The notes under the pieces: generated by a model
Told to the model about the DNA's origin: nothing
The model's input: only the letters and a program-made list of their open reading frames with translations
Database searches by the model: none
Translations under genes and position numbers: made by a program
Assembly (NCBI RefSeq): GCF_902713615.1
Contig: NC_052158.1
Span: 158,666,691 to 158,730,690, forward strand
Reading direction: 5' to 3'
DNA from: Scyliorhinus canicula
Taxonomy: Eukaryota
DNA length: 64,000 nt
Part shown: positions 8,005-64,000 of the stretch, piece by piece
How positions within the stretch are numbered: position 1 is the stretch's first letter
How the letters are laid out: each line of letters begins with the position of its first letter

Positions 8005-9090
8005 TTGTTTAAATGCTTGATCCTCGACTTTCTGACCAACAGACCACAGTCAGTAAGAATGAACACCAACACCTCCTCCACAATAGTCCTCAACACCGGT
8101 GCCCCGCAAGACTGCGTACTCTACTCCCTGTACACACACGACTGCATGGCAAAACTTGGTTCCAACTCCATCTACAAGTTTGCTGACAATACGACCATAG
8201 TGGGCTGGATCTTGAATAACGATGAGTCAGAATACAGGAGGGAGATAGAGAACCTAGTGGAGTGGTGCAGCGACAAAAATCTCTCCCTTAATGCCAGCAA
8301 AACTAAAGAGCTGGTCATCGACTTCAGGAAGCAAAATACTGTACACACCCCTGTCAGCATCAACGGAGCCGAGGTAGAGATGGTGAGCAGTTTCAAATTC
8401 CTAGGGGTGCACATCACCAAAAATCTATCCTGGTCCACTCATGTCGACGCTATCACCAAGAAAGCACAACAGCGCCTTTACTTCCTCAGGAAACTAAGGA
8501 AATTCGGCATGTCCACATTAACCCTTACCAACTTTTACAGATGCACTATAGAGAGCATCCTTTCGGGCTGCATCACAGCCTGGTATGGCAACTGCTCGGC
8601 CCAGGACCGCAAGGAACTTCAGAGAGTCGTGAATACCGCCCAGTCCATCACACGAACCTGCCTCCCATCCATTGATTCCATCTACACATCCCACTGCCGG
8701 GGGAAAGCAGGCAGCATAATCAAGGATCCCTCCCACCCGGCTTACTCACTTTTCCAACTTCTTCCATCGGGCAGGAGATTCAGAAGTCTGAGAACACGGA
8801 TGAACAGACTCAAAAACAACTTCTTTCCCACTGTCACCATACTCCTAAATGACCCTCTTATGGACTGTCCTCATTAACACTACACCCATGTCTGCTTCAT
8901 CTGACGCCAATGCTTATGTAGTACATTGTATATATTGTGTTGCCCTATTATGTATTCTCATGTATTTTCTTGAATTCTGTTCAATTCCCTTTTCTACCCA
9001 TGTACTGAATGATCTGTTGAGCTGCTTGCAGAAAAATACTTTTCACTGTACCTCGGTACACGTGACAATAAACAAATCCAATCCAATCCA
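8005..9090 (+). mobile_element. Rex1/Babar LINE, 5'-truncated (RT C-terminal half + 3' UTR)
   Basis: ILDFLTNRPQSVR, TGAPQDCVL, KFADNTTIVG, KAQQRLYFLRKL, FYRCTIESIL; ends gtgacaataaacaaa(tccaa)n. Confidence 0.9.
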
Positions 9091-9114
9091 ATGTTGTAGT
9101 GTATGTGCATAAAG

Positions 9115-16434: not shown

Positions 16435-16752
16435 CTGAACAAATCACACCGGCTGCCTCCTCTTCCAGGGAACAGTTATTGTGAGCCAAGTTTTTCAATT
16501 CACACTTCCACGGGTCGTCTTCGGTGCCGTTGCAGTGAAGTAAAGCACTTGCCATGGGCCACTGGCCGGCCCCAAATTGGGAATCTCCTGATGCAGACAC
16601 AGCCTCGCCGCAGCCCACGTATTTACATATAACACGAGCCTCATTCATATCCCACATTCGACCGCAGATTGTACGCCAGCTGCCAAAGTCGCCGCCTTGA
16701 ACTGTTCCAGCACAGGGACTACCTCCACCTTGAAGCTTGACATTTAGATCGG
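16435..16752 (-). CDS. Exon 4: SRCR domain 2 (group B)
   Basis: AATAATAG|CC GAT CTA... to TGT TCA G|GTAACT; 318 nt. ADLNVKLQGGGSPCAGTVQGGDFGSWRTICGRMWDMNEARVICKYVGCGEA...AGVICS, 8 Cys. Confidence 0.92.
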
Positions 16753-19084: not shown

Positions 19085-19250
19085 TAAAGGACAGTGGGCT
19101 AAACAGCTGGCTTATAATGCAGAGCAAGGCCAGCAGCGTGGGTTCGATTCCCGTACCAGCCTCCCCGAACAGGCGCTGGGATATGACGACCAGGGGCTTT
19201 TCACAGTGACTTAATTGAAGCCTACTTGTGACAATAAGCGATTATTATTA
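19085..19250 (+). mobile_element. Short-head SINE (GTGACAATAAG-tail family)
   Basis: gggctaaacagctggct...ggttcgattcccgtaccagcctccccgaacaggcg...gtgacaataagcg(att)n. Confidence 0.8.
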
Positions 19251-19559: not shown

Positions 19560-20060
19560 AAACTCACCCGATTAGCTTTCTTCATTATGTCCTCCCTCAT
19601 CAATCACTTTCATCCTTTGTTGTTCCTTCCTACTTTTAAATCCTTAACCTGATAACACTTGCTAACCAGCACACCTTTCCCATGCTCCCTTCCTCTCTAA
19701 AGTATTTGCACAAGCTTTCGACTCCCAAATCCATGCACAGCTTCCCAGAACTCCCTCAGCAGCAAAAAGGCTCCTATCAAGGTCATAAAATATATGCTCT
19801 GTATTGATCAAAATTCTTTCTCATCCTACTTGACCTGGCTGCACTCGTTTACACCCTTATTCTCAAGATCCTCGTCAAAACATTGCCCTCTGTTACAGCT
19901 ACAGGAAATGATCTCATCTCCATTCGTCTCTATCTGTTCATAGCCACTAAACCAACTACTACTGTTTCCGTTTACAGTTCTGCAGTTATTTCAAGCAATC
20001 CCAACAGGTCAATGTTTGTCTTCCGCCTCGCCATTTATCATTTGCTATTGCTGAAAAACA
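19560..20060 (+). mobile_element. Ancient L2 LINE RT fragment
   Basis: Decayed IKVI...LILLDLAA.V.TL...IL pattern typical of the L2 RT. Confidence 0.5.
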
Positions 20061-20371
20061 GGCATTTTATTTAAACTATACATCTTCCACTCATCAGCAC
20101 TGATGCAAAAATTTCAGAGGGAGCAATAATTTGTACTGCATAATAAAATGGTGCTTATTTCGTTGGCGAGTCGACTCTGACTGGTGGATATATTGCCATG
20201 CAGAGTGTCACAGAGAACCTTGGTTCGAAAAGGTGCATGCCGGGGTGTATTACGTTTTGTCCCCAGAGTAGGGCTGCCTGCATATAAATGTTTGTAACGT
20301 CCAGCACGTGTAAAGCACGCATATTGTGAGCCCGACTGATCATCTTAAATCGATTACTGGTGTAATTTATA

Positions 20372-22105
20372 GCCCACACCTCCACCACCATTCCATTTCA
20401 ATTACTTCACTCTCCAAATTAATAAAGAATTCTGACATTATGGTCGCTCTTCCCCAAAGGCTCCACACAATATGATTATTAATTCATCACTTCTCAGTAC
20501 GCAGTACCCGTCTGAAATGCCCTGTTCTCTGATTGGCTCCTCAACGCATTGGCTTTAAAAATCATCCCATGCACACTCCAGTAACTGTTCCTCCACTATT
20601 CCATTGCTAGTTTGGTTGGTCCAAACTCTATGTTAATTAAAGTCATCCACGTTTCCAGTTTTACAATGGTTGCATGCATCACTGATTTATTACTTGAAAA
20701 CTTCCCTTACATCTCCACCACTTTTGGGAGTCCTATCGTCAACATTTCCTGCCCCTTCACGTTTCTTATCTCCACCCATACAGATTCCGCTTTTCCGAAA
20801 AAATATACTCCCTCATTAATACATTGGTTTTCTCCCTTCCTAACAACGATATCCCATCTTCTTTCTCTTTTATTTTGTCCCCCTTGAATACCGCTGATTG
20901 TTGCGCTCCCATGCCTTTGAAACCTTGCATATTCAATTGCCCCATTGTATATGAACGCCTCTTGAAATGGTCAACTGGTACATTCCACTCTCCCACCTCT
21001 TCCACGTAATCATGAACATTCTTCCTTTTCAAAGAACAGTCTGATTCCGTTTTGAATTATTCTCATAAACCTGTTTCCATCACACTCACAGACAGTGCAT
21101 TCCATGCCCGAATGACTCGGTGCATAAAAACGTGTTTCCTGATTGTTTATTCCTTATTGCTTTCGAAAAAAAAAATGTATTGGTTATCACATTTGATGTT
21201 ACATACTTCAGTTCATACGTTAAATTACAAGTTGCATAAGCGCACTTAACGCAAAGCAAAAGCAATCCGGGAAAAAAATAAAAAGAGAAAAACCAAAGTG
21301 AGAAAAAAAAGACGGAAGCAATAAACGATCATTGCGTATATTTGCATGTTCTTGTCTCCCCTCCCTCTGTGACCCTATTCCCCATTAGTCAGTCTGCCTC
21401 AACAGTACTCCCCAGTGTGGCCCAAGCGTATTTCTGCTGGTGATTCGGATTTTCCGCATGCCCTCGGGCCCGTCCTCTGTGCCTTTGTCTGTTGCCCCTC
21501 GCATTCCCTTTTGTGGGTCTTTACCCCCCTTCTTCCCCCCAGTCTCCTTCACTCCCCTCTCTTTTCGTTTATGTTCCCTGGCTCGTCTGTTACCTACCCC
21601 CCCCCCCCTCCCGCCCTCAAACCCTTGCTTCACTGGTTGCTGACTACGAATAGGCCATGGTAAAAAATAGTGAACGGCTCCCACGTCGAGTAGAAGCCCT
21701 TTTCTGACCCCGGATGGCAAATTTTATCTTCTGTATTTGGAGGAATTTGGGCAGATCGGACAGCTTGTCTGCAGCTTTTCATGGTGTTGCCAATCGCCAG
21801 CTGACCAGGAATCTTCGGTGAGCGATTAGAGAAGCAAAGGCAAGGGCGTTGGCCACCATCCCATAAAAAGCTCTGGCTGGTCTGAGACCCCATAAACCAC
21901 CACTTTTAGGCATGGCTTCATCATCACTCCCAGAACCTTGGATATTGCCTCAAAGAAGTTTGTGCAGGACCGGACAGGTCTGGGGAAGGAGCAGAACTTG
22001 GCAACTTTCACATGTGTCCTCCACCTCCGGAAAAATCTGCTCATTCGAGTGCTGCTTTGGTGTCATCTGTGCAACAGTTTAGCTGCATTCGGCTTAGCTC
22101 TGCAT
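20372..22105 (-). repeat. Left arm of ~1.73-kb inverted duplication (derived copy)
   Basis: Reverse complement of 33789-35526 along its whole length; the ORF track shows mirrored peptides (MVGPN.MLIKVIHV..., MDIASKKFVQDRTG..., MIRIFRMPSG...). Confidence 0.95.
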
Positions 22106-22298
22106 GCTGTTGAACGTTTTCCAATGCCTCGAAGATCCTGAGATTACTACTTTTGACGCACGCTGTTTTCAGTCGCCGTCCTACCTCCCGAAAGTGTGCC
22201 ATCAGGACTTGGGCCCTTCCCGGTCTCTGCCATTGGTACCAACTTGGACTACGATTTCTGGCTATTTACATTTGTCGTGGTTCCCCAGGACGACAATT

Positions 22299-22995
22299 TG
22301 TTCGTACCTATTAAAACACCGAGAGTCTGAGAAGCGATCTTTCAAGCAGTGAACTTTATTTTCCTAGCACAAGAAAACAAAGCTGGGATGTCCGGAACAA
22401 TCCGAAGAGCCTCAGGGCTTACTGTCTTTTATGTACATTTCAACTCCATATCTCAAACTCTTATCTTACTTTACAGCCCTCTTATCTTGCTTTCCAATCT
22501 GACCTTGCTTTGGCCACCATTGTTTTTAGTTGGCCCTTTATCTGTCCCATTCGAGATTGGTCGCTCCCTATTTCCTCTCTTTGCTTCTTAAACCATGGTG
22601 GCTATAACTCTTGTCCTTATCTTGCTCCTGTGTAAACTTCCCTGCTTGTGAAACAATCGTGGTTTTGCTGACTTAGGCCGAATGTATAGAAAAACATGCT
22701 CACTCCATTCTTGTCTTTTTATGGCCATTATTTATGGTCAACCATTAAGTTGAGCCACTGAGCAGTATTCATTGTTCTCCCAAGTGACTATTATTTGTCT
22801 TTGTTAATTAGTAAATGCTATACTACTTTTCTGGGTCTTCTGCTTTAATCATATTAACTATACTTGATTACATTAGGTCACACGAGGTTACCCTAGGTTA
22901 CATACTCATCTCAATACTCACCTAAATCTACTTTATCATTTCACTAAAACCTATGATTCTGAACTTCATACCTAACTCATACAATATCCAGTACA
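22299..22995 (-). mobile_element. Probable solo LTR (ERV/Gypsy-like)
   Basis: TGT...ACA termini flanked by 4-bp AATT direct repeats. On the minus strand CCAAT (22556-22560), TACATAAAA (22427-22435) and AATAAA (22355-22360) appear in U3-R-U5 order. Confidence 0.55.
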
Positions 22996-23390
22996 AATTC
23001 CCTTACACATTCTCCCAGAAAAATATCATGCAGCCTGTATATCCTTCACCCTGGCATGAACAAGGTAACATTTATTTCTGGAATCACATCGACAGTCATA
23101 GAGACGCCTGTCTGTTCTCCAACATAACGAACCCCCTATTATTACATTTCTTCCCTCCTCTTTCTCGCCTGTTGTACCACAGCTGAACATGGCTTCCAAT
23201 GGATGCACCCTTATGAACTCCAGAATCCATGTTCCAGAACTGAAACGAATTACCTCCATAACCTTCCAATCATTTTAATATGACTTCAATCATTGGAGAG
23301 TTTGCCCCAGATTCCCATTGACCCTAGTATTGCTTAGGTCTCTTGTGATGCATACGGTCAATCCTACCTCGATCTAATGGGCAGTCTCTC

Positions 23391-23756
23391 ACATGCGCCC
23401 TGCAGACGACTCAGACCCGGTCGCCAACCATGTACGTGCCTGATTGGTATTGACTAGTGTGGCTCTTGTGTTCAGCTCTTCATTCAATATTTAGATCTAG
23501 TTTCCAGCTAGGTCAGGATCTGATCAGCCATGCGAGAACTTCTTTTTTGAGGGAACGTTCGGTCATATGACCTAATCTTTCAGTCGCTAGTTCATTTTGC
23601 TCTGTGCAGTGCCTTGAGGCTCATTTTGCGACACTGGAGTCCTGCCATATCTGACTGAATGACACCGCCCTCCAGTGGGACATGCGCCCTGCAGACGACT
23701 CGGACCCGGTCGCCAACCATGTACGTGCCTGATTGGTATTAACTAGTGTGGCTCTT
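23391..23756. repeat. 77-bp direct repeat, two copies (23391-23467, 23680-23756)
   Basis: acatgcgccctgcagacgactc(a/g)gacccggtcgccaaccatgtacgtgcctgattggtatt(g/a)actagtgtggctctt; 2 mismatches. Confidence 0.95.
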
Positions 23757-23941
23757 TGTTGCTATGAACAGATTGGCGCCTGCTCTGGAGCTACTGGACT
23801 GGCACACAGATAAGGAGGTTAGCACTAACCCTGAATGTGCGACAAAGTTGGGGAATTCAGCTATTTTGCCAACATTATTTCCATGCCCGTCAATAAGTAT
23901 AATGAACGAAAATATTCAATAGTAATTATGGGAACAAATAC

Positions 23942-24253
23942 CTTTACAGTACATGGTTAAAACCGTCCCAGTTTCGCAGTTCAGTTGGCCCGACGGTTTC
24001 AATTGACACTCCGACAACGACAATTCCGTTCCATTGCACTGAACCTTATCCAGCAACACATATCTTGTTTCCTTGGAGATCGGCTTTTTCAACGTTGTGT
24101 AATAAGCAACGCAGCCAATTTGCTTGCAGAGTATTTCTGAAGCTGCAGTATCCCAAAGGCTACTGCAGATAGAGTTCCACTGTCCACGGTAATAAACTTT
24201 CAGTTCCCCAATACATGGTGCTTCTGGACCCACCAACTTCACGTCTCTCAATT
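23942..24253 (-). CDS. Exon 3: SRCR domain 1 (group B, divergent)
   Basis: TTCAACAG|AA TTG AGA... to TGT AAA G|GTATTT; 312 nt. ELRDVKLVGPEAPCIGELKVYYRGQWNSICSSLWD...LCKQIGC...VQCNGTELSLSEC...LNC...MYCK, 8 Cys in SRCR spacing. Confidence 0.9.
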
Positions 24254-25139
24254 CTGTTGAACATTTAACACGTGAAACACTAATTATGCAAATAGTCCAA
24301 CACGGAACTGAAATAATAATCATGGAAACATTTCAAAACATTTTAAAACTTAACACTAAGCTGACATTGATTTCTCAGAACATCAATGTTATACTGTGCA
24401 TGAATGTGTTGTTTTTTCAATGCTTTAAGATTTGGTTTAAACTCCAACTCGAACTTGTTTTTGTGTCAAATTCCTTTTCTCTGTAGTACTAAGCATCGTT
24501 TTGTCTTAAAATGTGACCTTGAAACAATTGATTTCATTATTCGTTTTTCATGCTTTGACCAACTTAGATGCTAGAAAATGGACCATAGAGTTGTTACCGC
24601 CAGTGCCTCCTCAATAGTGATCAAAACAATGATATTTTTATGGGATCGACCTATTTCCAATTACTGCACAACCGATTTGAACAGAAATTAGATTCACATT
24701 CCTGCATAAGTGAGCATCGATCTTTAATGCGTGGTTTATTTTGCCTTTCAGTTGTAGGGAAAAATATTCTACTTAAGCGTGAATGCAACCCTGGACATTT
24801 TTACATGCCAATAATTTGACACCACATTCAGTTAGATTCAATATCAGCACAGATTCGCAAAGAACGTTGTGCTGCGTGATAAGATCCACAATGGCCACTT
24901 TACTTTTCTTCGCTGATCTCATGGCAATTGCACGATACCCGAATATGAATGGAGGCATTGGGGTTGCTAAAGGTGCCATCAGGCTGACAGCGATTTTTAA
25001 CGGTGGAGGAAGAAATTGTGTAAAGTTTTCTGTTAAGAGATTCGGGTTATTAATTAACATAAATTGCTGAAGGATCGTGATCAAATCCTCATATCATGTT
25101 GTTCCAATACAGTGTAAGTTATTGGGATAAGTGACAATG

Positions 25140-25790
25140 AGAGGTCTCTCTTACCATTCAAATGCACGAAATGCAGTTCAGAGAAGGTTTACTGCAATGA
25201 TGGCTGGAATGGAATGGACCTGTTGTCTTTTGAGGGAAGGTTGGACAGTCAAGGTTTGCATCCACTGGAGTTTTGAGGAGTAAGAGACAAGATGATTGAA
25301 ACATGCAAAATCCTGAGTGGCCTCACAAGGTGGATATGAAAAAGGTGTTCCCTTTCGTTGGAGAATCTAGTAAAAGTGTCATTACTTCAAAATAAGGGGG
25401 ACCCCATTTAAGACAGAGATGCAGAGTTTTTGTTTTCTCAGTGAGGTTTATGTCTTCACTAGTCTCTTCCTCTAAAAATGGGGTAAGCAGAGTTTTGGTT
25501 GTTTGCAAGGCATAATGGGCAGCACGGTAGATTCGGTTCCCTGCTGGGTCACTTATTGGGTTATGGGGATGCGAGGGCTTTAGTGGGCCGGTGCAGACTC
25601 GATAGACCAAATAGACTCCTGCACTGTACGTTCTAAAAAACAAATAATAATTTTATTTGAAATGTTTGTGGTAAAAGATAATAGGCATAAGTGGAAATTT
25701 AGAGATGAGATTACAAGGAGGTTGGCCATGATCTTATTAAAAGGCGAAGCACGTTACTACCCCTGAACCTAATTCGTAAGCATTTCGAAC
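25140..25790 (+). mobile_element. CR1 3' fragment with small HE1 piece
   Basis: ..AVQRRFT.., IETCKIL motifs; HE1-like gggcagcacggtag...gtgcagactcgat at ~25515-25640. Confidence 0.65.
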
Positions 25791-28700
25791 ATAGTCAATC
25801 AGCAAAGATGAGAAAGACGATTAAATATCCAAGGTAACAGAGAGATCACCAGTACTTTCCAAGCGCTTCATTTCCACAAAAATTCCGAAAGGGATTCAAC
25901 CTTTGGAGACAAGTCACTTTGAGGGTCCCCAGCATCTTACGTTTTCGCATAGCAAACGTATTATTAGATTGTATTGAATAGCCAACAATTACACCACGTT
26001 GCCCCGGAACTCCAAGAACAGCGGCAACGGAGCCTTTGAATTTCGAAATGGAAAAGTTCCAAATCCCAAAGTGGCAGATATCGTTCAAATTGATCTCGTG
26101 CACCGAACAAAATGAGCACTAGTTGCATAAGTCCTCAATGCATTTTTGCTATAGTTATGCAGTTTATGTGCAGCCATTTGCATGGGTCCAGGCAATAACA
26201 GACATCCACCATTGCATTTGTTCGTGATTTTTTTGAGTACAAGAGCAAGTAGGTTATTTCAAACTTGTAATAGTCACGGGTTCGGCTTCAACTAGAGAAG
26301 TTGGAGCCATGTTTCAGGAAGGACGTGGAAACACTGAAGCGGGAAAGAAAATATTCACGGCAATGGTTCTGAGACGAAGATCTTCAGACGTAAAGACGGA
26401 AGGGAGAGCGTGGACATATTTCCTCAGTGAAAAGAAGGCTGAGAGCACGTTTTCTAGAGCTAGTGTACACAAAATGAAGATCGATCTGGAAAGAGTATAA
26501 AGGGATAAACTGCTCATACTCGTGAAATGATCGAGTAAAAGAAGACACAGCTGCTGCAAAATAATGAGGAAAATACCGTGGGCGGACGCATGAAAGGTTG
26601 CTCGCCTCCTGGAAGCTCGAATTTCGGCGCATTCAGCCCAAAGCAGCCTGCTAAAAACGGGAGAAAACCCGTTCAGCATCACAAAGACAATACATGCCAA
26701 GCAGCAGCATGGCAGCAAGGCAGTAAGAATCTTGAGAGAAGGACAAAGGCCATAATAAGCAAACGAGGCGACGAGGCCTCCACCACACCTAATCGGGAAG
26801 GGTCGCCAGACCACACACAGGGCTCTTCCCTGTGAACGTATGGAGCGAGCTCCTGAGACAGGAACTCTAGCAGCTCAAGGATGCGATTAAAATAGAGATT
26901 AAAGCAATGGTAAATGTGGCGGTAGTGGAGGCACTAGGCACCCTGCATGACGCACTGGAAAAGGCAGAAGTGCACCTGGAGACTCAGGAAGTGATTATCC
27001 TTGAACTAGAGAAGGTCTCGATCAACCAGAGCGATCGGATCTCCGCAGTGGTGACCTAAATGGCAGCATTGGTGGCAACGCAAGCGATACTAACGGGGAA
27101 GGTCGAGGAGCACAAAAATCGGTCGCGCTGGTAGAACATCAGCATTGTTCGGCAAACTGAGGGATCCGTGAGCAGGAACCCCATGTAATATGTGGCCCAA
27201 ATGGCACTCAAACTGGTGGGAAGGGGAAGCTTCCCCAAGCCTCCAGAAATGGACAGAGCCTCATTGTCACTCGGGCCAAACCCAAGGCCAGCGAACAGCC
27301 GCGGCTATCATTGCGAAGCTGCACCTGCACCAAGATGGGGAAAGGATCTTAAATTGAGCGGGACAGACAGGACCTGGAACTGGATTGGCCACTTGATTCT
27401 GATGTATCGGGACATTAGGGAAGACGTGGGTAAGCGCCGGGCAGAATTTAACAATGCCAAGATGGCACTTTATATAAACAATGTGCAGTTTGGAATGCTG
27501 TATCCGGCCAAATTCTGAGCAATGTCCAAGGCAGAGAATATTAATTCACGCAGTTTGGTTCATCCACAAATGAATGCTGAGAAAATAACAATGTAACCAG
27601 AATTGAAGCGGATACCCCAGCTTATGGAGACACTGACAGACTATTTGCGTGGGACTACACCGTCTAATTTTTAATTCTGCAATAATGTCTCAGAAACGAG
27701 GGGCGAGAGCATCAGGGTGCAGGAGAGCGAGAGGAGGGAGAAGTGGGAACGGACAGGAAACGGTCAGGAGTTGGCATATGTTGATCCTGGGGGCGACCAA
27801 CACAGAGGCGCGTAAGCTAGCATGAGGAAATATGAGTGCTGACTGGGGGTGGGGTGGGGTGGGGGGGGGGGGGGGGGGTGGGGAGAGGGGGGGGGGGGGG
27901 GAGGGGGAGGAGGGCGTGGCACATGTCGCGTCGGCGATCGGATGCCGGCGAAAGGAGGGAGAACACTAGAGATAGGGAGTTAATAGGGGGAAAGCAAAGG
28001 TGATAAGGCTTGAGCTGGAAACTCACAGGCATGAAGGAGGTGGAAGTGGGCGGGGGGGGCAGACTCGGGGGGATAGCAGAGGGACAAGGGGTTGAAGGAC
28101 GCTGGGCTGTCTATGACAGATCCCACATGGCAGCAATGAACACAAAGACACCGCAGCAGCTACTTTGGAGGTCCCCAAAACAGAAGGAAATTCCGGAGTA
28201 CAGGGGATCATCCACATGGCGGGCACATAGATGGTGGTTACCTCTCTCGGTCCCTTGTAAAAGGGAAATACTGGAGCACAGGGACCGAGCCCATGGTGAG
28301 TACGGTGACCACTGCCACCTTGGATGCCCCCTAACAAAGGTAACAACAGAGTGAAGGGACGCATCCACAAGGTATGTTCAGTTGATCCCATAAGAAGGGA
28401 GGTGGGGGGGGGGGGGGTGCAGAAACCCTCCATCAGACTAGTTATCAGGAACGTCAGGGAACCAAATGGCCCAATGAAAAAAATCGAGGGTTTTTCCCCT
28501 TCTAAAAGTAGGAAAGGCGACATAGTCTTCCTCCAAGAGCCCCACCAAAGGTAGAATGACCGACTTCAGATAACAGGATGCTGTGTGGGACAAACTTACC
28601 AACCATGCGGCGGTAAAAGGGCAAGGAGTTGGCCAATGTTGCTCAATAGGTCGACAGCATTTACAGTGACTAGGATGGTTACGGAACGAGGCAGAAAGTG

Positions 28701-29227
28701 GTGTACTGGAAGTGGCACCAGTGATCCTTGTTAATGTGAACGCTCCAACTGGGATCAGGTGGAATTAATGACAAAGACCATGGAACTGATGGGGGCAGTG
28801 GACTCATGGAGATTTGCACGCTAAAGGGAGAAGGAGATCTCCCTTGAATAGATGCACACGGTAGATACATAGGGTCGACACCAGGATTGAATTCTTTATA
28901 GTGTGACAAGCATTGTTTCCAAGTGAAGTATGTGTGGTGCACTCCAAAATCATAATCTCCGTCCATGCTTCACACTACATGGATGTGTGATTAGGGGTGG
29001 GCTGGGCCCATTATCTCATAGGAGGCTGGACACGGCCCAACCTGCCAATAAGGCATTCAGCGAATGGATATTGCAAGAGATATTCTAACAACCAGAATGG
29101 GGAAATCACACCTACCAATTTCTGGGAGGTGCTGAAGGCAGTGAGGGGCGAAATCATTGCAGACAAGGCGTGCAGCGATAGGAAGGAAATGGTGGCTCAG
29201 CAGCATGTAGTTGACTGCATGTTGGGG

Positions 29228-29594
29228 TTTACATAGATTTACATAGAATTTATAGTGCAGAGGGAGGCCATTCGCCCCATCGAGTCTGCACCGGCTCTTG
29301 GAAAGAGAATCCTACCCCCTACCCAAGGTCAACACCTCCACCCTATCCCCATAACTCCATAACCCCACCCAACACTAAGGGCAGTTTTGGAAACTAAGGG
29401 CAATTTATCATGACCAATCCACCTAACCCGCACATCTTTGGACTGTGGGAGGAAACCGGAGCACCCGGAGGAAACCCACGCACACACGGGGAGGATGTGC
29501 AGACTCCGCACAGACAGTGACCCAAGCCGGAATCGAACCTGGTACCCTGGAGCTGTGAAGCGATTGTGCTATCCACAATGCTACCGTGCTGCCC
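29228..29594 (-). mobile_element. HE1 V-SINE, full length, nested in L1
   Basis: Canonical head/body and aattctatg-type tail. Confidence 0.9.
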
Positions 29595-31044
29595 TGAAGC
29601 AGCGGAACCTGACAGCCCTGATTGTAGAGCTGCTGGCGGACAGGAAGAATCTACAAATCGACTTGGACCTGCTCTCGACGAGAAGAGCAGTGCATTAGCT
29701 TCCACAGATATTAGGGACCTGTTATGAACATGGAGTCAAACCCAATTTCCTGCTGGCTCAGCAGCTGAGAAAGCATGCAGCCACGAGGAAAATAGTGGAC
29801 ATTACACACAACAGCAGGAAGCTAATCGTTGCATCTGAAAAGATAAACGAGACCTTTGAGACCTTTCACCGAGGGCTGTAAACCTCAGAGCCCCAGAGGT
29901 GGACTCAGAGATGAAGCAGATTCTCGATGTACTGGACATGGTAGTTGTGGGGGAAAATATGATGCGGGGCCTGCAAGCACCATTAAAACTGAGAGAGTCC
30001 GTGGTGAGTACGAACTCCATGCAGGCGGGGAAGGAGTCGGGCCAGGTAGAAATATTGCGGACATCTGAAAAAGAATTTGGGACAGAACTGGCCCCGCATC
30101 AGCATGAGATATTCGCCAGCTCGCTGTTCAGGGACTCCTTTCCGCCAAGAGTTGCACAAGCCTCAATATCGCTGATACTCAGGAAGGACAAAGGCCCAAC
30201 TGAGTGTGGATCCTACAAACTGAACTCGCTACTCAAAGTAGATGCAAATATCCTGGGAAAGCCCTGGCAAAGTGGCTGGGAGTGGCAAAGTGGTAATGGA
30301 AGACCAGACGAGCTTTGTCAAGGGCAGGCAGTTAATATTGAACACCAGGCGCCTGCTGAACGTGATAATGACTCCATTCAGGGAGAGACCACCAGAAGTG
30401 ATGATGTTCCTTCTCACAGAAAAGGCTTTCGACAGAGTCGAGTGGCAGTATACACATAGAGGTTCTGGACAGTTTGCACTTGGGCCAGGGTTCACGTCCC
30501 AGGGGAAATTATTGTAGATTGTTCCTGTGGCAAGAGAATGGATGAACTCAAAATATGTCCAGCTGTACAGAGGCAAGATAGGGATGCCCGGTACCCCTGC
30601 TGTTGATGCCTCTGGCAATCGAGACTCCAGGAATAGCACTCAGAATGCTGTAGGGCAGAAGAGGTATCCAGAGGAGGGAGACAAGGTTTATAGAGTTTAA
30701 CTGTACGCAGATGACCTGCTCTGCTACATACCGAACGCTGAAGGCAGCATGGAAGGGATCATTAAGCTCCGAAAGGAAATTCGAGCCTTCGTGGACTTCA
30801 ATCTCTACCTCAACAAAAACAAAATCTCCCCAGTGAATCAGCAAGGAGGAGGGACAGAACAAGAGGGGTTCCCATTCAAGCAAGCCAAAAGCAACTCATG
30901 CTATCTGAGGATCCAAATAGCCCACAACTGGACATGGATTCACAAATGTAACCTGACGAGTCTGGTAGAGAATGTCAAAAGGACCTGCAAATGTGGGACA
31001 CACTCCCACTCTCGCTGGCATGGATAGTGCAGACGATAAAAATG

Positions 31045-31226
31045 AAACGATAAATGTAAATCGCTTATTGTCACAATTAGGTTTCAAATGAAGTTACTGT
31101 GAAAAGCCCCTAGTCACCACATTTCGGCGCCTGTTCGGGGAGGCTGGTACGGGAATTGAACCGTGCTGCTGGCCTGCCTTGGTCTGATTTAAAAGCCTGC
31201 CATTTGGCCCTGAGCTAAACCAGCCC
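31045..31226 (-). mobile_element. Short-head SINE (GTGACAATAAG-tail family) nested in L1
   Basis: Closely matches 6108-6281. Confidence 0.8.
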
Positions 31227-31707
31227 CTCGAACATTGATCTACATCCCCATGGCCTTCTTCAACACAGTAGAGAAACTAATCATGGCACTTGCCTGGGGG
31301 CAGGGGTGGGCAGTGAAAAAGTGCACTACAAAGAAGAAGAAGCATGGGAGGCCTGGTCCTCCCATATCTACATTTCTACCACTGGGTGGCCATTGCAGAA
31401 AGTGTGAGGGAAAGAATTAAGGAACCAAGAGAGGAATGGGTGAGGATGGAGGGGTGATGCCGAATAAGGTCCTCCCTCCGAGCCCTAGCCACAATTGCAC
31501 GCCCATCTCTTCCGAACAAGTATGCAAGAGGCCCAGTAGCGGTATCTACGCTCCAAACGTGGTGTGAGATGAGACAGCACGTCAAGCAAACCAAACTGAA
31601 CACAATGGCACACATCTGTGACAAACACAGGTTTACACCTGCAACAATGAACGTAACCTTCAGAAGGTGAAGATAGGATAAGGGGACACTGACGATTAGA
31701 GGCATGA

Positions 31708-33446
31708 CATGGAGATGCCGGCGTTGGACTGGTGTGAGCACTGTAAGAAGTCTTGCAACACCAGGTTAAAGTCCAACAGGTTTGTTTAGAATCACTATCT
31801 TTCCGAACACAGCTCCTTGCTCGAGCGAATGAAGAGGTAGGTTGCAGAAACATATATAGACAAAGTCAAAGATGCAAGACGATAATTTCAATGCGAGTCT
31901 TTGCAGGTATTTAAGTATTTACAGGTCCAGACGGAGCAACTGGAGAGAGGGATAATCACAGGTTAAAGAGGTGTAAATTGTCTCAAGCCCGGACAGTTAG
32001 TAGGATTTCGCAAGCTCAGACCAGATAGTGGGGGGTGAATGTAGTACAACATGAATCCAAGCTCCCTATTGAGGCCGTACACATGTTTGCGGAACTTGGC
32101 GATAAGTTTCTGCTCGGCGATACTGCGTTGATGCGGGACTTGAGGGCCACCTTGGAGAACGCTTACCCGAAGGCCAGGGGCTGAATGCCCTTGACTGCTG
32201 AAGAGTTCCCCGACTGGAAGTAAAAATTCCTGCCTGGCAATTGTCGCGCGATGTCCGTTCATCCTTTGTTGCAGTGTCTGCATAGTATCACCAATGTACC
32301 ACACTTAGGGACATCCTTTCCTGCAGCGTATGAGGGAGACAACTTTTGTCGAGTCGCAAGAGTATGTACCATGTACCTGGTGGATGGTGTTCACACGTGG
32401 AATGGTGGTACCCATGTCGATGATTTGGCACATCTTGTAGAGATTGCCATGGCACGGTTGTGTGGTGTCGAGGTCGCTGTTCTGAAGGCTAGGTAGTTTG
32501 CTGGAAACAATGGTCTGTTTAAGGTTGCACGGTTGTTTGAAGGCCAGTAGTGGGGGTGTGGAGATGACCTTGGCAAGATGTTCATCTTCATCGGTGACCT
32601 GTTGAACACTGAGAAGAAGATGTCATCGTTTCTCTGCTCCGGATAAGTACTGGGTGACGAAGGTACTCTGTCGGTTGTATCGCATATTTGTCTTCTGAAG
32701 AGGTTGGTGTGTTTCTTTGCTGTGGTATGCTGGAACTGTCGATCGATTAGTGGAGCACCATATCCCATTCGTACGAGGGCATCTTTCAGCGTCCGCAGAT
32801 GTCCATTACGCTTCCCCTCGTATGAGCAGATCCTGTGTATACGGACCGCTTGTCTATAGGGGATGGCTTCTTCAATGTGTTCAGGGTGGATGCTGGAAAA
32901 CTGGAGTATCGTGACGTTATCCATGGGCTTGTGGTAAAGTGAAGTGCTGAGGTCACCGTCATTGATGGAGATGAGTGCGTCCAAGAATGCAACCGATTCT
33001 GGAGAGTAGTCCATGGTGAGTCTGATGGTTGGATGGAACTTATTGATATCATCGTGTAGTTGTTTCAGTGATTCTTTGCCATGGATCGAAAGGAAAAAAA
33101 TATAATTGATGTATCTCGTTTATAACGTTGGTTCAAGGTCCTATGCGGTGAGGAGGTCTTGTTCAAACTTGTGCATGATATTGGCAAATTGACATGAGAA
33201 TTTAGTCCCCATGGCTGTTCCATGTATCTGGATGACGAACTTGTTGTCACAGCTGAAGACGTTGTGGACCTCTGAAGACTTACTTACCTGCAAAGTATCG
33301 CATTCGAAGTATAGTCTTGCACCTTTGACTTTGTGTATGTATATGTTTCTGGAATCCACCTCTTCAATCACCCGAGGAAGGAGTTGTGCTCCGAAAGCTA
33401 ATGGTTCGAAACAAACCGTTTTGGACTGTAATCTGGTGTGGCTAGA
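31708..33446 (-). mobile_element. Penelope-like element (RT C-term + GIY-YIG endonuclease) with inverted pseudo-LTRs
   Basis: QIHGTAMGTKF, MDYSPESVAFLD, STSLYHKP, WYIGDT...RMNGHR...EQKLIAKF...GLNRE; 33280-33445 is the reverse complement of ~31750-31915. Confidence 0.9.
33366..33406 (+). ncRNA. Decayed minimal type-I hammerhead ribozyme motif in Penelope pLTR
   Basis: aatcac-CCGAGGA-a-ggagt(tgt)gctcc-GAAA-gcta-atggtt. The core is one substitution from CUGAnGA, stem II is intact, helix III is a minimal AGCU palindrome. A more decayed copy lies on the minus strand at ~31790-31830. Confidence 0.6.
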
Positions 33447-33788
33447 GTCACCTATGTACACATACAACATAATTGAGACCCTGGAGGACCTTACAGTTTG
33501 GCTCAAACTACCAAAAGGAAATTAACTGAGACACATGCAGGTCAACAACTTCCTCTATATGGAAACAACGACATACCCCCAGATACCAGGACATTTGCTA
33601 CTTGTAGAACTGTTGGACATGGGCGAATTAGGAATGGGGAACTGTGGGAACCTGTATCAGCGACTGTTGGAGGAGTTATGCAACATCCTGGATGAGACAA
33701 TGGAGAAATGGGAGGAAGAACTCGCAATAGAAGTGGGGGAGGGGATACTTAGATTTAAGAACTACACAGGGCTCACCCCACTTGGCAT

Positions 33789-35526
33789 ATGCAGAGCTAA
33801 GCCGAGTGCAGTTAAGCTGTTGCACAAATGACACCAAACCAGCACTCGAATGAGCAGATTTTTCCGGAGATGGAGGACACATGTGAAAGTTGCCAAGTTC
33901 TGCTCCTGCCGCAGACCTGTCCGGTCCTGCACAAACTTCTTTGAGGCAATATCCAAGGTTCTGGGAGTGATGATGAAGCCATGCCTAAAGGTGGTGGTTT
34001 ATGGGGTCTCAGACCAGCCTTAGCTTTTTATGGGATGGTGGCCAACGCCCTTGACTTTGCTTCTCTAATCGCTCACCGAAGATTCCTGATCAGCTGGCGA
34101 TTGGCAACACCATGAAAAGCTGCAGACAAGCTGTCCGATCTGCCGAAATTCCCCCAAATGCAGAAGATAAAATTTGCCATCCGGGGTGAGAAGAGGGCTT
34201 CTACTCGACGTGGCAGCCGTTCACTATTTTTTCCTATGGCCTATTCGTAGTCAGCAACCAGTGAAGCAAAGGTTTGAGGGCGGGAGAGGGGGGGGGGGGA
34301 GGGAACAGACGAGCCAGGGGACATAAAGGAAAAGAAAGGGGAGTGAAGGAGACTGGGGGGAAGAAGGGGGGTAAAGGCCCACAAAAGGGAATGCGAGGGG
34401 CAACAGACAAAGGCGCAGAAGGCGGGCCCGAGGGCATGCGGAAAATCCGAATCACCAGCAGAAATGCGCTTGGGCCACATTGGGGAGTACTGTTGAGGCA
34501 GACTGACTAATGGGGAATAGGGTCACAGAGGGAGGGGAGAAAAGAACATGCAAATATACGCAATGATCGTTTATTGCTTCCCTCTTTTTTTTCTCACTTT
34601 GGTTTTCCTCTTTTTATTTTTTTCCCGGATTGCTTTTGCTTTGCGTTAAGTGCGCTTATGCAACTTGTAATTTAACGTATGAACTGAAGTATGCAACATC
34701 AAATGTGATAACTAATACATTTTTTTTTCGAAAGCAATAAGGAATAAACAATCAGGAAACACGTTTTTATGCACCGAGTCATTCGGGCATGGAATGCACT
34801 GTCTGTGAGTGTGATGGAAACAGGTTTATGAGAATAATTCAAAACGGAATCAGACTGTTATTTGAAAAGGAAGAATGTCCATGATTACGTGGAAGAGGTG
34901 GGAGAGTGAAATGTACCAGTTGACCATTTCAAGAGGCGTTCATATACAATGGGGCAATTGTATATGCAAGGTTTCCAGGCATGGGAGCGCAACAATCAGC
35001 GGTATTCAGGGGGGACAAAATAAAAGAGAAAGAAGATGGGATATCGTTGTTAGGAAGGGAGAAAACCAATGCATTAGTGAGGGAGTATATTTTTTCGGAA
35101 AAGCGGAATCTGTATGTGTGGAGATAAGAAACGTGAAGGGGCAGGAAATGTTGACTATAGGCCTCCCAAAAGTGGTGGAGATGTAAGGGAAGTTTTCAAG
35201 TAATAAATCAGTGATGCATGCAACCATTGTAAAACTGGAAACATGGATGACTTTAATTAACATAGTGTTTGGACCAACCAAACTAGCAATGGTATAGTGG
35301 AGGAACAGTTACTGGAGTGTGCATGGGATGATTTTTAAAGCCAATGCGTTGAGGAGCCAATCAGAGAACAGGGCATTTCAGACGGGTACTGTGTAATGAG
35401 AAGTGATGAATTAATAATCATATTGTGTGGAGCCTTTGGGGAAGAGCGACCATAATGTCAGAATTCTTTATTAATTTGGAGAGTGAAGTAATTGAATCTG
35501 AAATGGAATGGCGTGGAGGTGTGGGC
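33789..35526 (+). repeat. Right arm of inverted duplication (source copy: L1 3' end + flanking CR1/SINE sequence)
   Basis: This copy is contiguous with L1 ORF2 upstream and with an HE1 3' fragment downstream, whereas the left arm is cut at both points. Confidence 0.95.
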
Positions 35527-37457
35527 AGGGTTGGGTGCGCTTTCCAAGGGCCGTTGCAGACTCGATGGGCCGACTGGCCTCATTCTGCACTGTAAATTCT
35601 ATGATTCTATGATTCTATGAAATTGGAGTCCTCAATCTACATAACCGAAACTATGGGGGTATGAGGTTAAGATAGATTGAGGGACTATATTCAAGGGGTT
35701 GATGGCAGATACACAATGTTTCATATTTAATGAATATGTGCAAAAGATACAATTACCCCTTCCTGCCTTGCTTAAAAATGAAAGAAGAAATGTGACTCAA
35801 CCATGACTTACAACATAAATTACGGATAATATAAAATACAAAGAAGGGCAAAAAATTGCCAGAAATAGCAGCAAGCCGGAGCATAGGGATCACTTTAGAA
35901 TTCAGCAAAAGAGTGCAAAGAATTTGATGGAGGGGTAAAATAGAGCATAACAGTTAATTGCAGGGAAGATTAAACTGACCATAAAGGATTTTATAAATAT
36001 TTGAAGACAGAATCATAAAATCATAGAATTTACTGTACAGAAGGAGGTCATTCTGCTATTCGAATCTGCACCGGTCCTTGGAAAGAGCACGCTACTTAAA
36101 CCAATGCCTCCACCCTATCCACGTCACCCAATAACCCCACCTAACCTGAGGGGCAATTCTGCATGGCCAATCCACCTAAACTGTACATCTTTGGACTCTG
36201 GGAGGAAACCGGAGTATCCGGAGGAAACCGACGCAGACACGGGACGAATGTGCAAACTCCACACAGACAGTCACCCGAGGCTGGAATTGAATCTGGCACC
36301 CTGGAGCGGTGAGGCAGCAGTGTTGACCACCGTGTCACCGAAATATGAGTAAAGACTCCCTGAGATTCAGACGGGGACCAAAGAAATAGCAGAGTAGGTG
36401 AACACATACTTTTCTTCTGTCTTCTCAAAAGAGGGTACAAATAACCTCCCATAAATGTATCGGAGCCTAGAAATTTGGGAAAGGGCAGAATTTAAGGAAA
36501 TTAGCATGCGTAAGGAAATAGTACCCAGGAAATGAATGTGGTTAAAGGCTGACAATTCACCAGGACCTAATAAATTCCATTAAAGGGTCGCCCTACTGAT
36601 TGCAATGGTGGGCATCGTCCACAATTCCATAGGTTCTGGAGCAGTTCCTACAGATTTGAGGATGGCATCTGTATCCCCATTATTTAATAGGATGGGAGAA
36701 AGAAAGGGAGAATTGCTGCCAGGTTAGCCCAGCATCAGGTATGGGGACGTTGCTAGAATCGATTATAAAAGATGGGATGACAGCACATTTGGAAAGCAGT
36801 AACGGGATTGGAAAATATCAGCATGGGTCCATGAATGCAAACATTGCATTCCAAATCTACTGGAGTTGTTTGAGGTTATGGCTAGTAGAATCAATAAGTG
36901 AGAATGAGTGGATGTGGTGCGTCTGTTTTGAGAAGGTTCCTCATGAGAGGTTATTGGGCAAATTTGAACCATAAGGGATCGGGAATGATGCAATTTCACG
37001 GATCGACAATTTTTAAAAATGAATTTAGATTACCCAATTATTTTTTCCAATTATGGGGCAATTTAGTGTGGCCAATCCACCTACTCTGCATATTTTTGGG
37101 TTGTGGGAGGCGAAACCCACGCAGACACGGAGAAAATGTGCAAACTGCACACGGACAGTGGCCCATAGCAGTGATCGAACCTGGGATCACGAATTGGGTG
37201 ACGTACAGGAAACAGAGAGGGGGAATAAATGGATCTTCTTCTGAGTGGCAGTCAGTGACCATTGAGTATGCAGGGATCAGTGCTTGAGTACTGTTGTTCA
37301 CAATGTTATTTTTATTGGTTCCTGGGACATGGGCATCAGAGGCTGTACAACACTTATTGCCCATCGCTCATTGCCGTGAGGGGCAGTTAAGAGTCAACCT
37401 CATTGCTGTGGGTCTGGAGTCACAGGTAAGTCAGACCAGTTCAGGATGGCACATTTC

Positions 37458-39148: not shown

Positions 39149-39217
39149 CTTTCTCATTCACTACTTCAACTGCAGCATGTTGAACGGAAGGTTGCAAAGA
39201 TGTTCCAAATGTTGCAA
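39149..39217 (-). CDS. Exon 2 (end of leader + N-terminal spacer): (V)ATFGTSLQPSVQHAAVEVVNEK
   Basis: Acceptor TTTTGTATTTTAG| and donor AAG|GTAAGC; 69 nt, phase 1-1, no stop. Completes a plausible signal peptide ...VSMVATFG and joins SRCR1 in frame. Confidence 0.85.
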
Positions 39218-62380: not shown

Positions 62381-64000
62381 ATTGGATTGGATTGGATTGG
62401 ATTTGATTATTGTCACCTGTACCGAGGTACAGTGAAAAGTATTTTTCTGGAAGCAGCTCAACTGATCATTCAGTACATAGGAAGAAAAGGGAATTTTTTA
62501 AAAATCAAGAAAATACAAGAAAATGCATAATAGGGCAACACAAGGTATACAATGTAACTACATAAGCATTGACATCGGATGAAGCATACAGGGTGTAGTG
62601 TTAATGAGGTCAGTCAATAAGAGGGTCATTTAGGAGTCTTGTGACAGTAGGGAGGAAGCTGTTTTTTGAGTCTGTTCGTGCATGTTCTCAGACTTCTGTA
62701 TCTCCTGCCCAATGGAGGTAGTTGGAAAGTGAGTAAGCCGGGTGGGAGGGATCCTTGATTATGCTGCCTGCTTTCCCCCGGCAGTGGGATGTGTAGATGG
62801 AGTCCATGGATGGGAGGCAGGTTTGTGTAATGGACTGGGCGGTATTCACGACTTTCTGAAGTGCCTTGCGGTCCTGGGCCGAGCAGTTGCCATACCAGGC
62901 TGTGATGCAGCCCGATAGGATGCTTTCTAGATAGATAGAGATAGAGACATAGAGCACAGAACAGGCCCTTCGGCCCACGATGTTGTGCCGAACTTTTGTC
63001 CAAGGTTAATCATAGAATTGTGGGCACTTTTAAGGGCAATTTATCATGACCAATCCACCCAACCTGCACATCTTTGGACTGTGGGAGGAAACCGGAGTAC
63101 CCGGAGGAAACCCACGCACACACGGGGAGGATGTGCAGACTCCACACAGATAGTGGCCCAAGTCGAAATCGAACTTGGGACCCTGGTGCATCTGTAAAAG
63201 TTGGTAATGGTTAATGTGGACATGCCGAATTTCCTTAGTTTCCTGAGGAAGTATAGGCGCTGTTGTGCTTTCTTGGTGATAGCATCGACGTGAGTGGACC
63301 AGGACAGATTTTTGGTGATGTGCACTGCTAGGAATTTGACACTGTTAACCATCTCCACCTCGGCTCCGTTGATGCTGACAGGGGTGTGTACAGTGCTTTG
63401 CTTCCTGAAGTCAATGGCCAGCTCTTCAGTTTTGCTGGCATTGAGGGAGAGATTGTTGTCGTTGCACCACTCCACTAGGTTCTCTATCTCCCTCCTGCAT
63501 TCGGACTCGTCATTATTCCAGATCCGTCCCACTATGGTCGTATCGTCAGCAAACTTGTAGATGGAGTTGGAACCAAGTTTTGCCACGCAGTTGTGTGTGT
63601 ACAGGGAGTAGAGTAGGGGGCTAAGTACGCAGCCTTGCGGAGCATCGGTTTTGAGGACTATTGTGGAGGAGGTGTTGGTGTTCATTTTTACTGATTGTGG
63701 TTTCTTGGTCAGAAAATCGAGGATCCAGATGCAGAGTGGAAAGCCAAGTCCTAGGTTTTGGAGCCTTGATATGAGTTTGGCTGGGATTATGGTAGTGATG
63801 GCGGAGCTGTAGTCAATAAATAGGAGTCTGATGTAGGAGTCCTTGTTTTCGAGATGCTCTAGGAATGAGTGTAGGGCCAGGGAAATGGCCTCTGATGAAG
63901 ACTGGTTGCGACGGTATGCGCATTGAAGCCGGTCAATGCGTTCCGGGAGTATGGAGGTGATGCTCTCCATGATCAGCCTCTCAAAGCATTGCATTACAAA
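62381..64000 (-). mobile_element. Rex1/Babar LINE (runs off window) with nested 5'-truncated HE1 (62930-63186)
   Basis: MQCFERL, AYRRNQS, RLLFIDYSSA, APQGCVLSPLLYSLYT, KFADDTTIVG; (attgg)n tail; closely similar to 8005-9090. Confidence 0.92.

Follow-up and report, generated by a model that had tools for sequence, protein, structure and literature searches.

SRCR exons and the inverted repeat

The window, the whole 64,000-nucleotide stretch of Scyliorhinus canicula contig NC_052158.1 that was analysed, contains four SRCR exons, each of 312-318 nt and phase 1-1. The two of them that matter here, together with a candidate upstream exon, belong to a minus-strand gene model.

39149-39217, minus strand: candidate exon 2, a 69-nt micro-exon of phase 1-1 encoding ...ATFGTSLQPSVQHAAVEVVNEK; weak homology to P0001 and an AG/GT frame; outside the arms of the inverted repeat
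23942-24253, minus strand: SRCR1 exon, 312 nt, phase 1-1, eight cysteines (group B); Pfam SRCR PF00530, E=2.3e-20; AG acceptor and GT donor
16435-16752, minus strand: SRCR2 exon (exon 4), 318 nt, phase 1-1; SRCR match and splice sites; outside the arms

SRCR1 was aligned with SRCR2-4. It combines the SRCR signature, eight cysteines and a single phase 1-1 exon, as expected of a group-B domain, and it is oriented in the assembly in sense to its gene. The best matches of the SRCR domains among solved structures are CD163, PIT54, CD5L and CD6. The closest sequence found is P0001, an SRCR protein of 127 aa from Chiloscyllium plagiosum that carries the automatic name 'galectin-3-binding protein-like' and shares 55% identity with SRCR1. 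P0001 consists of a signal peptide, a linker and then directly SRCR1, and its gene spans about 14.5 kb. Candidate exon 2 emerged from this homology (residues 15-38 of P0001; weak, tblastn E=0.015), while a de novo signal-peptide exon scan alone gave no candidate for it and did not locate exon 1. The predicted join between exon 2 and SRCR1, ...NEK-ELRDVKLVG, is parallel to ...NAK-DLRDLRLVG in P0001. The initial annotation had proposed that exon 2 splices in frame to exon 4, and the predicted join does keep the frame. In-frame skipping of SRCR1 is thus a true prediction of the gene model but a generic one, because all SRCR exons here are of phase 1-1.

SRCR1 is flanked by two long inverted copies of one sequence.

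20372-22105, no strand assigned: left arm, derived from the right one by inverted copying; within the SRCR1-SRCR2 intron, 1.8 kb past the SRCR1 donor as the gene is transcribed
22106-33788, no strand assigned: spacer, 11,683 bp; contains a single SRCR exon as well as interspersed repeats and transposon-like ORFs
33789-35526, no strand assigned: right arm, from which the left one was copied; within the exon 2-SRCR1 intron, 9.5 kb before the SRCR1 acceptor as the gene is transcribed

A repeat search and self-BLAST aligned 20372-22105 with the reverse complement, 35526-33789, at 96.3% identity over 1,740 columns. These are exactly the coordinates of the initial annotation, which had judged the arms, by eye, to be more than 95% identical. 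The left arm is 1,734 bp long and the right arm 1,738 bp. In the MAFFT alignment they differ by 55 mismatches (31 transitions and 24 transversions, nine of the mismatches at CpG) and five indel events, with a JC distance of 0.0325, and the similarity ends abruptly at all four edges. Self-BLAST found no third copy of the unit in the window. SRCR1 is the sole SRCR match in the spacer, and the earlier description of a single recognisable exon there holds under the rebuilt gene model.

The exon is in use, because a spliced RNA contig begins precisely at the donor that the gene model predicts. This contig (record 15 of run X10) matches 23942-24117 with zero mismatches and continues for 56 spliced-on letters past the donor at 23942. 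X10 is the only one of the listed RNA runs that contains the exon, and most contain none of its sequence words. Coverage of 7-11% of a 6-kb stretch in several RNA-like runs was considered as a sign of gene expression and was rejected; in X9, the one such run examined, the signal arises mainly not from the gene but from a repeat at about 22273-22997 that is high-copy and highly expressed.

Origin, reality and age of the duplication

The direction of copying can be read at the outer edge of the right arm, which cuts through a SINE.

35440-35610, no strand assigned: SINE copy across the outer edge of the right arm (35526); BLAST match of 35505-35604 to 57429-57530 and alignment with other SINE copies

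The SINE is complete at the edge of the right arm and extends past 35526 into the right flank, while the left arm retains just about 22 nt of it. Therefore, the right arm is the source. Inspection of the aligned junctions showed that each is blunt and lacks both a direct repeat and an A-tail, so that neither a TSD nor poly(A) is present at the arm junctions. The arms are a DNA-mediated segmental duplication and not a transposon pair: their edges lie off transposon termini, the junctions bear no TSD or poly(A), and the SINE is cut. On the DNA-level origin, the lack of TSD and poly(A) and the partial SINE within the unit, the initial annotation was borne out. Its labels of an L1 3' end and an old CR1 piece stay tentative, as no Pfam family was matched in the arm ORFs. 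Rfam and tRNA scans gave nothing relevant within the arms.

By contig-derived depth, the arm is made up of pieces that differ in copy number, some high and some low. Only two bins are high-copy, 21000-21199 (depth 1,330-2,740) and 21800-21999 (about 175-180), and most others are near unique depth. The window self-BLAST and the approximate contig-derived depth together indicate about two copies of the unit overall, not a dispersed family.

The reading as a simple insertion comes from one junction only. The ORF over the inner right junction (33535-33831) had no homologue among solved structures or in an exhaustive representative search; therefore, transposon continuity at this point cannot be used to separate a simple insertion from the footprint of an inversion.

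Independent DNA samples bear on whether the left arm exists at all. The public DNA runs consist of contigs of 300-500 nt, shorter than the 1.7-kb arm, and samples X1 and X2 come from different studies. Letters specific to the left arm occur in both, namely T at 20600 (X1 and X2), C at 20737 (X1) and C at 20776 (X2), and X2 also holds right-arm letters at eight diagnostic sites and one indel. One X2 contig is changed at 20357 and 20387, on either side of 20372, and probably spans the outer end of the left arm. It is therefore highly improbable that the assembly has put a misplaced or fold-back left arm where the genome has none. Contig cover of the junctions is admittedly thin, with no X1 depth at 20200-20399 and no bridging contig at 22105. 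However, the arm bins at 20400-20799 in X2 reach a depth of about 12, where unique bins have 4-9, which is about twice that of the unique flanks (contig-derived and approximate), and 3.2% divergence with five indels far exceeds typical shark diversity. In the epaulette shark, pi is 0.002 (PMC10587355).

The duplication had been called recent, which is right only in a relative sense. A shark-like mutation rate is 7e-10 per bp per generation (PMC10587355), and with a distance of 3.25% the arms would be roughly ten million generations old or more. Their longest perfect tract measures 131 bp, and randomly scattered differences would give a mean of 132. Their differences are not significantly unevenly scattered (outer versus inner rate, p=0.078) and look neutral from the alignment. 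Two age strata within the arms were considered and dropped, since a change-point test was not significant. Neither the long near-identical tracts nor the conversion signature expected of exchanging arms was seen. Because the longest identical tract equals the random expectation, frequent exchange between the arms is disfavoured; they appear to have diverged without homogenisation, which argues against it. Contigs of other individuals do combine letters of the left and of the right type. In X1 the letter at 20731 is G yet that at 20737 is C, and record 17 of X2 has four differences where seven are expected of a pure right arm. Such states could reflect arm-to-arm conversion instead of ordinary polymorphism.

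Possible effects of the arms on SRCR1

The locus is probably best explained as a genuine, rather old inverted segmental duplication within a minus-strand SRCR group-B gene, and most likely as a neutral structural by-product. A 1.74-kb stretch of intron 2 (now 33789-35526) that was already a mosaic of older repeat fragments would have been duplicated as DNA. The duplicate would have been placed in reversed orientation in intron 3 (now 20372-22105), bluntly and without TSD or poly(A), presumably by a replication template switch or by templated break repair. Both copies would then have drifted neutrally to a substitution divergence of 3.2%. SRCR1 lies between them in sense orientation and is spliced into mRNA. 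Its position makes it eligible for two processes already known, intron pairing in the pre-mRNA, with back-splicing or skipping, and NAHR inversion, which would be rare. There is no sign that the gene employs one or the other as a switch. In structure the locus qualifies for both, but as a case it is ordinary.

Pairing at the RNA level is the alternative with most in its favour, although we regard it as unlikely. The arms would base-pair in the pre-mRNA over about 1.7 kb, with SRCR1 in the loop, and would yield, at a measurable level, a 312-nt circle and, by skipping of SRCR1, an in-frame receptor without the distal domain. Back-splicing and skipping are favoured when the two introns beside an exon contain reverse-complementary matches (PMC8330042), and this geometry, with complementarity in both introns that dominates over pairs within an intron, is present around SRCR1. 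The arm pair dominates the matches across the exon, with a predicted duplex energy of -3276 kcal/mol; the downstream intron has no competing inverted pair, and the competitors in the upstream intron are weak (182 nt or shorter, 86% or less). With a pair that is by far the strongest to span the exon and is nearly free of competition, an RNA-level effect of arm pairing would not be surprising. The left arm would also be transcribed before the SRCR2 acceptor, so that pairing can precede splicing, and the join of exon 2 to exon 4 stays in frame. However, the right arm is 9.5 kb away from the SRCR1 acceptor, and in the sole transcript contig SRCR1 is linearly spliced at its donor. No 'go back' joint at 23942/24253 was present in the contigs of the four runs examined, of which only X10 has the exon (depth 2.6). 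A junction of exon 2 with SRCR2, which falls beyond every 6-kb stretch that includes the exon, was likewise not seen. Contigs show such joints poorly, and an exon found in only one listed run points to low expression and gives little power.

The main idea of the initial annotation was a switch at the DNA level. In this reading the arms recombine by NAHR and the 11.7-kb spacer is turned round, as a germline polymorphism or somatically, so that SRCR1 would become antisense and be lost from the mRNA. We consider such a two-state allele improbable. The two arms are the pair of high-identity inverted repeats around a segment that an NAHR-type inversion requires, arms of 1.7 kb with an invertible segment of about 13 kb are within the range of validated human inversions (PMC3961182), and the mixed arm states in other individuals would fit arm exchange. 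However, human inversion breakpoints fall in high-identity stretches between the repeats, and a 782-bp region of 99.9% identity is the likeliest breakpoint site of one such inversion (PMC3961182). The shark arms, at 3.2% substitution divergence and with no identical tract beyond the chance length, are unlike these long high-identity regions. In the assembly the exon is sense-oriented and it is expressed, and contigs of 300-500 nt, too short to span an arm, gave no second orientation. A programmed somatic event is further disfavoured by the arm edges, at which no RSS-like match was found; between 19 and 37 kb such matches occur only at 19202, 31101 and 31601, and the whole window has seven. Quite improbable, too, is the consequence that recurrent germline or somatic inversion of SRCR1 gives each individual or cell one or the other form of an innate immune receptor, with or without its membrane-distal domain.

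One joint of the 'opposite strands' type, at 21762/21835 in X1 (one contig, depth 2.6), was examined as a possible inversion. NAHR between the arms leaves no novel junction inside an arm. The joint was therefore rejected and looks like a fold-back chimera.

Finally, the arms could be a consequence of an inversion and not its cause. When an inversion proceeds through staggered breaks, the sequence at each of its ends is duplicated in inverted form, and the search at the inner right junction gave no sign of ancestral continuity. The arms might then be the break ends that were duplicated when the spacer was once inverted. This would require that SRCR1 was formerly antisense to its own gene, or that it was flipped twice, whereas in Chiloscyllium P0001 reads directly from signal peptide and linker into SRCR1 in a gene of about 14.5 kb. 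We give this possibility very little credence.

Under the preferred reading of a neutral inverted duplication, the present value of the locus is that of a clean and polarised local inverted DNA duplication, with source and copy known, blunt junctions and traces in two independent samples. It is also a concrete and cheap target for genotyping and circRNA assays in a species with growing RNA resources. If the exon were toggled, by inversion or by intron pairing, this shark gene of the scavenger-receptor type would have an inbuilt means of producing a shorter receptor that lacks the most divergent outer domain, a matter of interest for how innate immune diversity has evolved. Were inversion the means, DNA inversion would serve as a switch for an exon of a vertebrate receptor.

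Comparison with known systems

The exon arrangement is that of the multi-domain group-B receptors of the CD163, CD5L, CD6 and WC1 type, which likewise use one 312-318-nt phase 1-1 exon for each eight-cysteine domain. The shark gene is matched to these named receptors by similarity, with orthology to none of them established.

Complementary introns around a single frame-neutral exon, with little competition within the introns, are likewise found with Alu pairs in mammals and in zip-2 of C. elegans (PMC8330042). The shark match is 1.7 kb long, whereas those in the Alu and zip-2 cases are tens to hundreds of nucleotides, and it arose by a local segmental duplication and not, as in Alu-type cases, from dispersed SINEs. 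Circular or skipped RNA is part of the Alu and zip-2 cases, while none was observed at the shark locus.

The DNA geometry is comparable to that of two human inversions, HsInv0347 (1.6-kb THE1C repeats, 7.1 kb) and HsInv0114 (2.7-kb composite TE/SD repeats, 14.7 kb) (PMC3961182). In the human cases, as in the shark, the inverted copies measure 1.6-2.8 kb and the unique segment between them 5-15 kb. Both orientations of the human inversions have been genotyped in people, whereas a single orientation is known in the shark, and the shark arms, 3.2% diverged and with no long identical tract, are unlike the human inversion repeats. The repeats of HsInv0114 are a mosaic of transposon fragments, like the shark arms; however, unlike in the human inversion cases, the segment between the shark arms carries a coding exon of its host gene.

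Structure and origin of the inverted repeat

No other self-match in the window (self-BLAST) comes close in strength to a pair of inverted copies, referred to here as the arms.

Arms and spacer
20372-22105, left arm
22106-33788, spacer, 11,683 bp
33789-35526, right arm, inverted relative to the left arm

The arms (20372-22105 vs 35526-33789) are 96.3% identical over 1,740 columns in a repeat search and self-BLAST of the window. Similarity is lost abruptly at all four arm edges in a global alignment with 200-bp flanks, and there are no N runs in the window. The near-identical inverted repeat described in the initial annotation is therefore confirmed. The arms differ by 55 substitutions (31 transitions and 24 transversions; 9 at CpG) and five indel events (10 gap columns), giving a Jukes-Cantor (JC) distance of 0.0325. 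With a mutation rate like that of sharks (7e-10 per bp per generation; PMC10587355), about 2e7 generations would produce this distance (about 1e7 with the upper confidence bound); therefore, the duplication, initially called recent, is so only in a relative sense.

The outer edge of the right arm (35526) falls within a SINE that extends approximately 85 nt further, to about 35610; copies of the element elsewhere in the window (57360-57640 and 29130-29400) align on either side of the edge. The duplicated unit thus lacks its own transposon termini, because its edge cuts a SINE that continues outside. The left arm retains only approximately 22 nt of the SINE, followed by unrelated sequence. Since the SINE is complete at the right arm and cut at the left, the right arm lies in its original context; it is the source and the left arm the copy. 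Inspection of the global alignment revealed no target-site duplication, poly(A) tail or meaningful microhomology at the left arm junctions. The proposed DNA-level duplication, as opposed to a single transposon, and the inclusion of part of a SINE are both borne out. The arm ORFs had no match in Pfam, so the earlier assignments to an L1 3' end and a CR1 piece have no profile support, and an ORF crossing the inner right junction had no homologue among 1.84 billion representatives.

Other repeats were observed in the window. A second long inverted pair (8019-9092 / 62386-63725, about 91% identity) carries reverse-transcriptase ORFs (Pfam RVT_1 and ALKBH8_N) and represents two oppositely oriented LINE copies, 53 kb apart, which flank most of the gene. 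A transposon-like ORF run on the minus strand (31963-33506, 113-207 aa) adjoins the right arm and, from its motifs, resembles a putative Penelope-like element (RT then GIY-YIG); two of its ORFs (31963-32304 and 32391-33014) had no Pfam match. At the same place there is a local inverted pair (31751-31929 / 33265-33446). RSS-like heptamer/nonamer matches with 22-23-nt spacers at 19202 (+) and 31101 (-) fall within copies of a single dispersed repeat (19127-19243 / 31059-31175), and are probably chance features of that family.

The bracketed exon

A tblastn search of the window with the SRCR ORF from the spacer identified four SRCR exons of a minus-strand gene.

Exons of the SRCR receptor gene
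39149-39217, minus strand, candidate exon 2, 69-nt phase 1-1 micro-exon with weak alignment to the P0001 linker (E=0.015)
24253-23942, minus strand, SRCR1 (exon 3), 312 nt, splice sites resolved
16752-16435, minus strand, SRCR2 (exon 4), 318 nt, splice sites resolved
6970-6656, minus strand, SRCR3, 315 nt, splice sites resolved
5353-5039, minus strand, SRCR4, 315 nt, splice sites resolved

Each SRCR exon is phase 1-1 and encodes 8 cysteines. SRCR1 matches Pfam SRCR with E=2e-20, is 22-27% identical to the SRCR2-4 domains, and has its best matches among solved structures in CD163, PIT54, CD5L and CD6. A word-indexed search returned a single relative, P0001, a 127-aa protein of Chiloscyllium plagiosum whose label "galectin-3-binding protein-like" is an automatic name. 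Its layout is a signal peptide, a short linker and SRCR1. Candidate exon 2 is framed by a good AG acceptor and the donor GTAAGC, and its predicted join to SRCR1 (...VVNEK-ELRDVKLVG) parallels P0001 (...TPNAK-DLRDLRLVG). In the C. plagiosum annotation, P0001 is a separate gene spanning 14.5 kb, and a 365-aa SRCR gene begins 1.4 kb beyond it on the same strand; these may be one receptor gene with a split annotation, or transcripts may end after SRCR1.

Candidate exon 2 is located beyond the right arm and SRCR2 beyond the left, so the arms appear to bracket exactly one exon, as first proposed. Splicing of exon 2 to SRCR2 would indeed be in frame. However, every SRCR exon here is frame-neutral, so in-frame skipping would be common to the gene family and not specific to this cassette. 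The structural reading, a DNA-level inverted duplication around one frame-neutral exon, is supported.

In an RNA run search, only X10 contained words of the SRCR1 exon. Its record 15 (232 nt) matches 23942-24117 with 0 mismatches from record position 57; therefore, 56 letters lie beyond the predicted donor. The record represents a spliced transcript containing SRCR1 and confirms the donor site. DNA contigs over the exon region also depart from the assembly: one from sample X2 (23852-24205, exon and 3' flank) at 27/354 positions, and the X1 contig at 8/402. These differences point to a close paralogue at another locus or to SRCR1 alleles of unusual divergence.

Support for the left arm in public samples

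The public runs under the same species label include two DNA samples from different studies, X1 (2019) and X2 (2024). All runs are short contigs and were mapped onto 20000-25999. Contig-derived depth over the arm is a mosaic of high and low bins.

Contig-derived depth
21000-21199, depth 1,330-2,740
21800-21999, depth about 175-180
most other arm bins, low depth
20400-20799 in X2, depth about 12
unique bins in X2, depth 4-9

The X2 depth of about 12, against 4-9 in unique bins, suggests about two copies. X2 has right-arm letters at eight diagnostic sites (20600, 20731, 20737, 20776, 20816, 20821, 21034 and 21182) and the right-arm state at the 21166 indel.

An artefactual left arm would fit the nil depth of X1 at 20200-20399, and probable contig bridging concerns only the left outer junction (20372), in X2 only. 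However, left-arm letters occur in both samples (T at 20600 in X1 and X2; X1 also has C at 20737, and X2 has C at 20776). One X2 contig (depth 4.7) is marked by an insertion at 20357 and by a deletion at 20387, which places it on either side of the 20372 edge; judging from the bin mean of 4.86, it seems to extend across the entire bin. Typical shark diversity (pi 0.002 for the epaulette shark, PMC10587355) is, moreover, far lower than the divergence between the arms. The high divergence and the contig evidence together make an artefact highly improbable.

The spacer contains a high-copy repeat, a 753-bp block (22254-23006, with its core at about 22273-22997) whose contig depth ranges from hundreds to thousands and which is abundant in RNA-like runs (depth as high as about 6,000 in X9). 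One X2 contig links 22253 to 23007 with 28 other letters between; therefore, there is an allele or paralogue without the block, pointing to an insertion that is young or polymorphic.

Possible RNA pairing and DNA exchange between the arms

Pairing of the arms in the pre-mRNA could cause back-splicing or skipping of SRCR1; we rate this, at a fairly low probability, as the likelier functional consequence. Reverse-complementary intron matches promote both outcomes (PMC8330042), and the arm pair is the sole strong match of this type across SRCR1. Competing inverted pairs are absent from the downstream intron and weak in the upstream one (<=182 nt, <=86% identity). The predicted duplex energy is -3276 kcal/mol (RNAduplex). 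Since the left arm is transcribed ahead of the SRCR2 acceptor, we infer that pairing could precede splicing of the downstream intron. No back-splice joint at SRCR1 was reported among the contigs, whose depth of 2.6 gives little power to show one. The predicted 312-nt circle (23942-24253) would have a stop-free coding frame, with junction codon GAA and one in-frame ATG.

At the DNA level, the longest perfect tract agrees with 60 randomly placed differences (131 bp vs mean 132, 5-95% range 91-192), and the rate difference between outer and inner parts of the arms is not significant (p=0.078); thus, there is no homogenisation signature. This weighs to some extent against frequent exchange between the arms. 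The repeat has evidently long coexisted with a functional, sense-oriented SRCR1. In X1 and X2, the arm contigs combine letters of the left and the right type, and nearly everywhere they depart from the assembly by about 1-2%; this pattern may reflect ordinary polymorphism, paralogues or some arm-to-arm conversion. The contigs are too short for orientation across a 1.7-kb arm. An "opposite strands" joint in X1 (21762/21835; single contig, depth 2.6) is not the product expected of recombination between the arms, and was read as a chimera.

That SRCR1 forms a cassette open to inversion or skipping is a legitimate hypothesis, of a type already known, but no sign of such switching was seen. Validated human inversions mediated by inverted repeats span a size range that includes the arm and spacer geometry seen here (PMC3961182); among them are HsInv0347 (1.6-kb repeats, 7.1-kb inversion) and HsInv0114 (2.7-kb composite repeats, 14.7-kb inversion). 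Refined breakpoints of such inversions sit in high-identity regions between the repeats, and the most likely site in one of them is a 782-bp region of 99.9% identity (PMC3961182), whereas the longest perfect tract between the arms is 131 bp.
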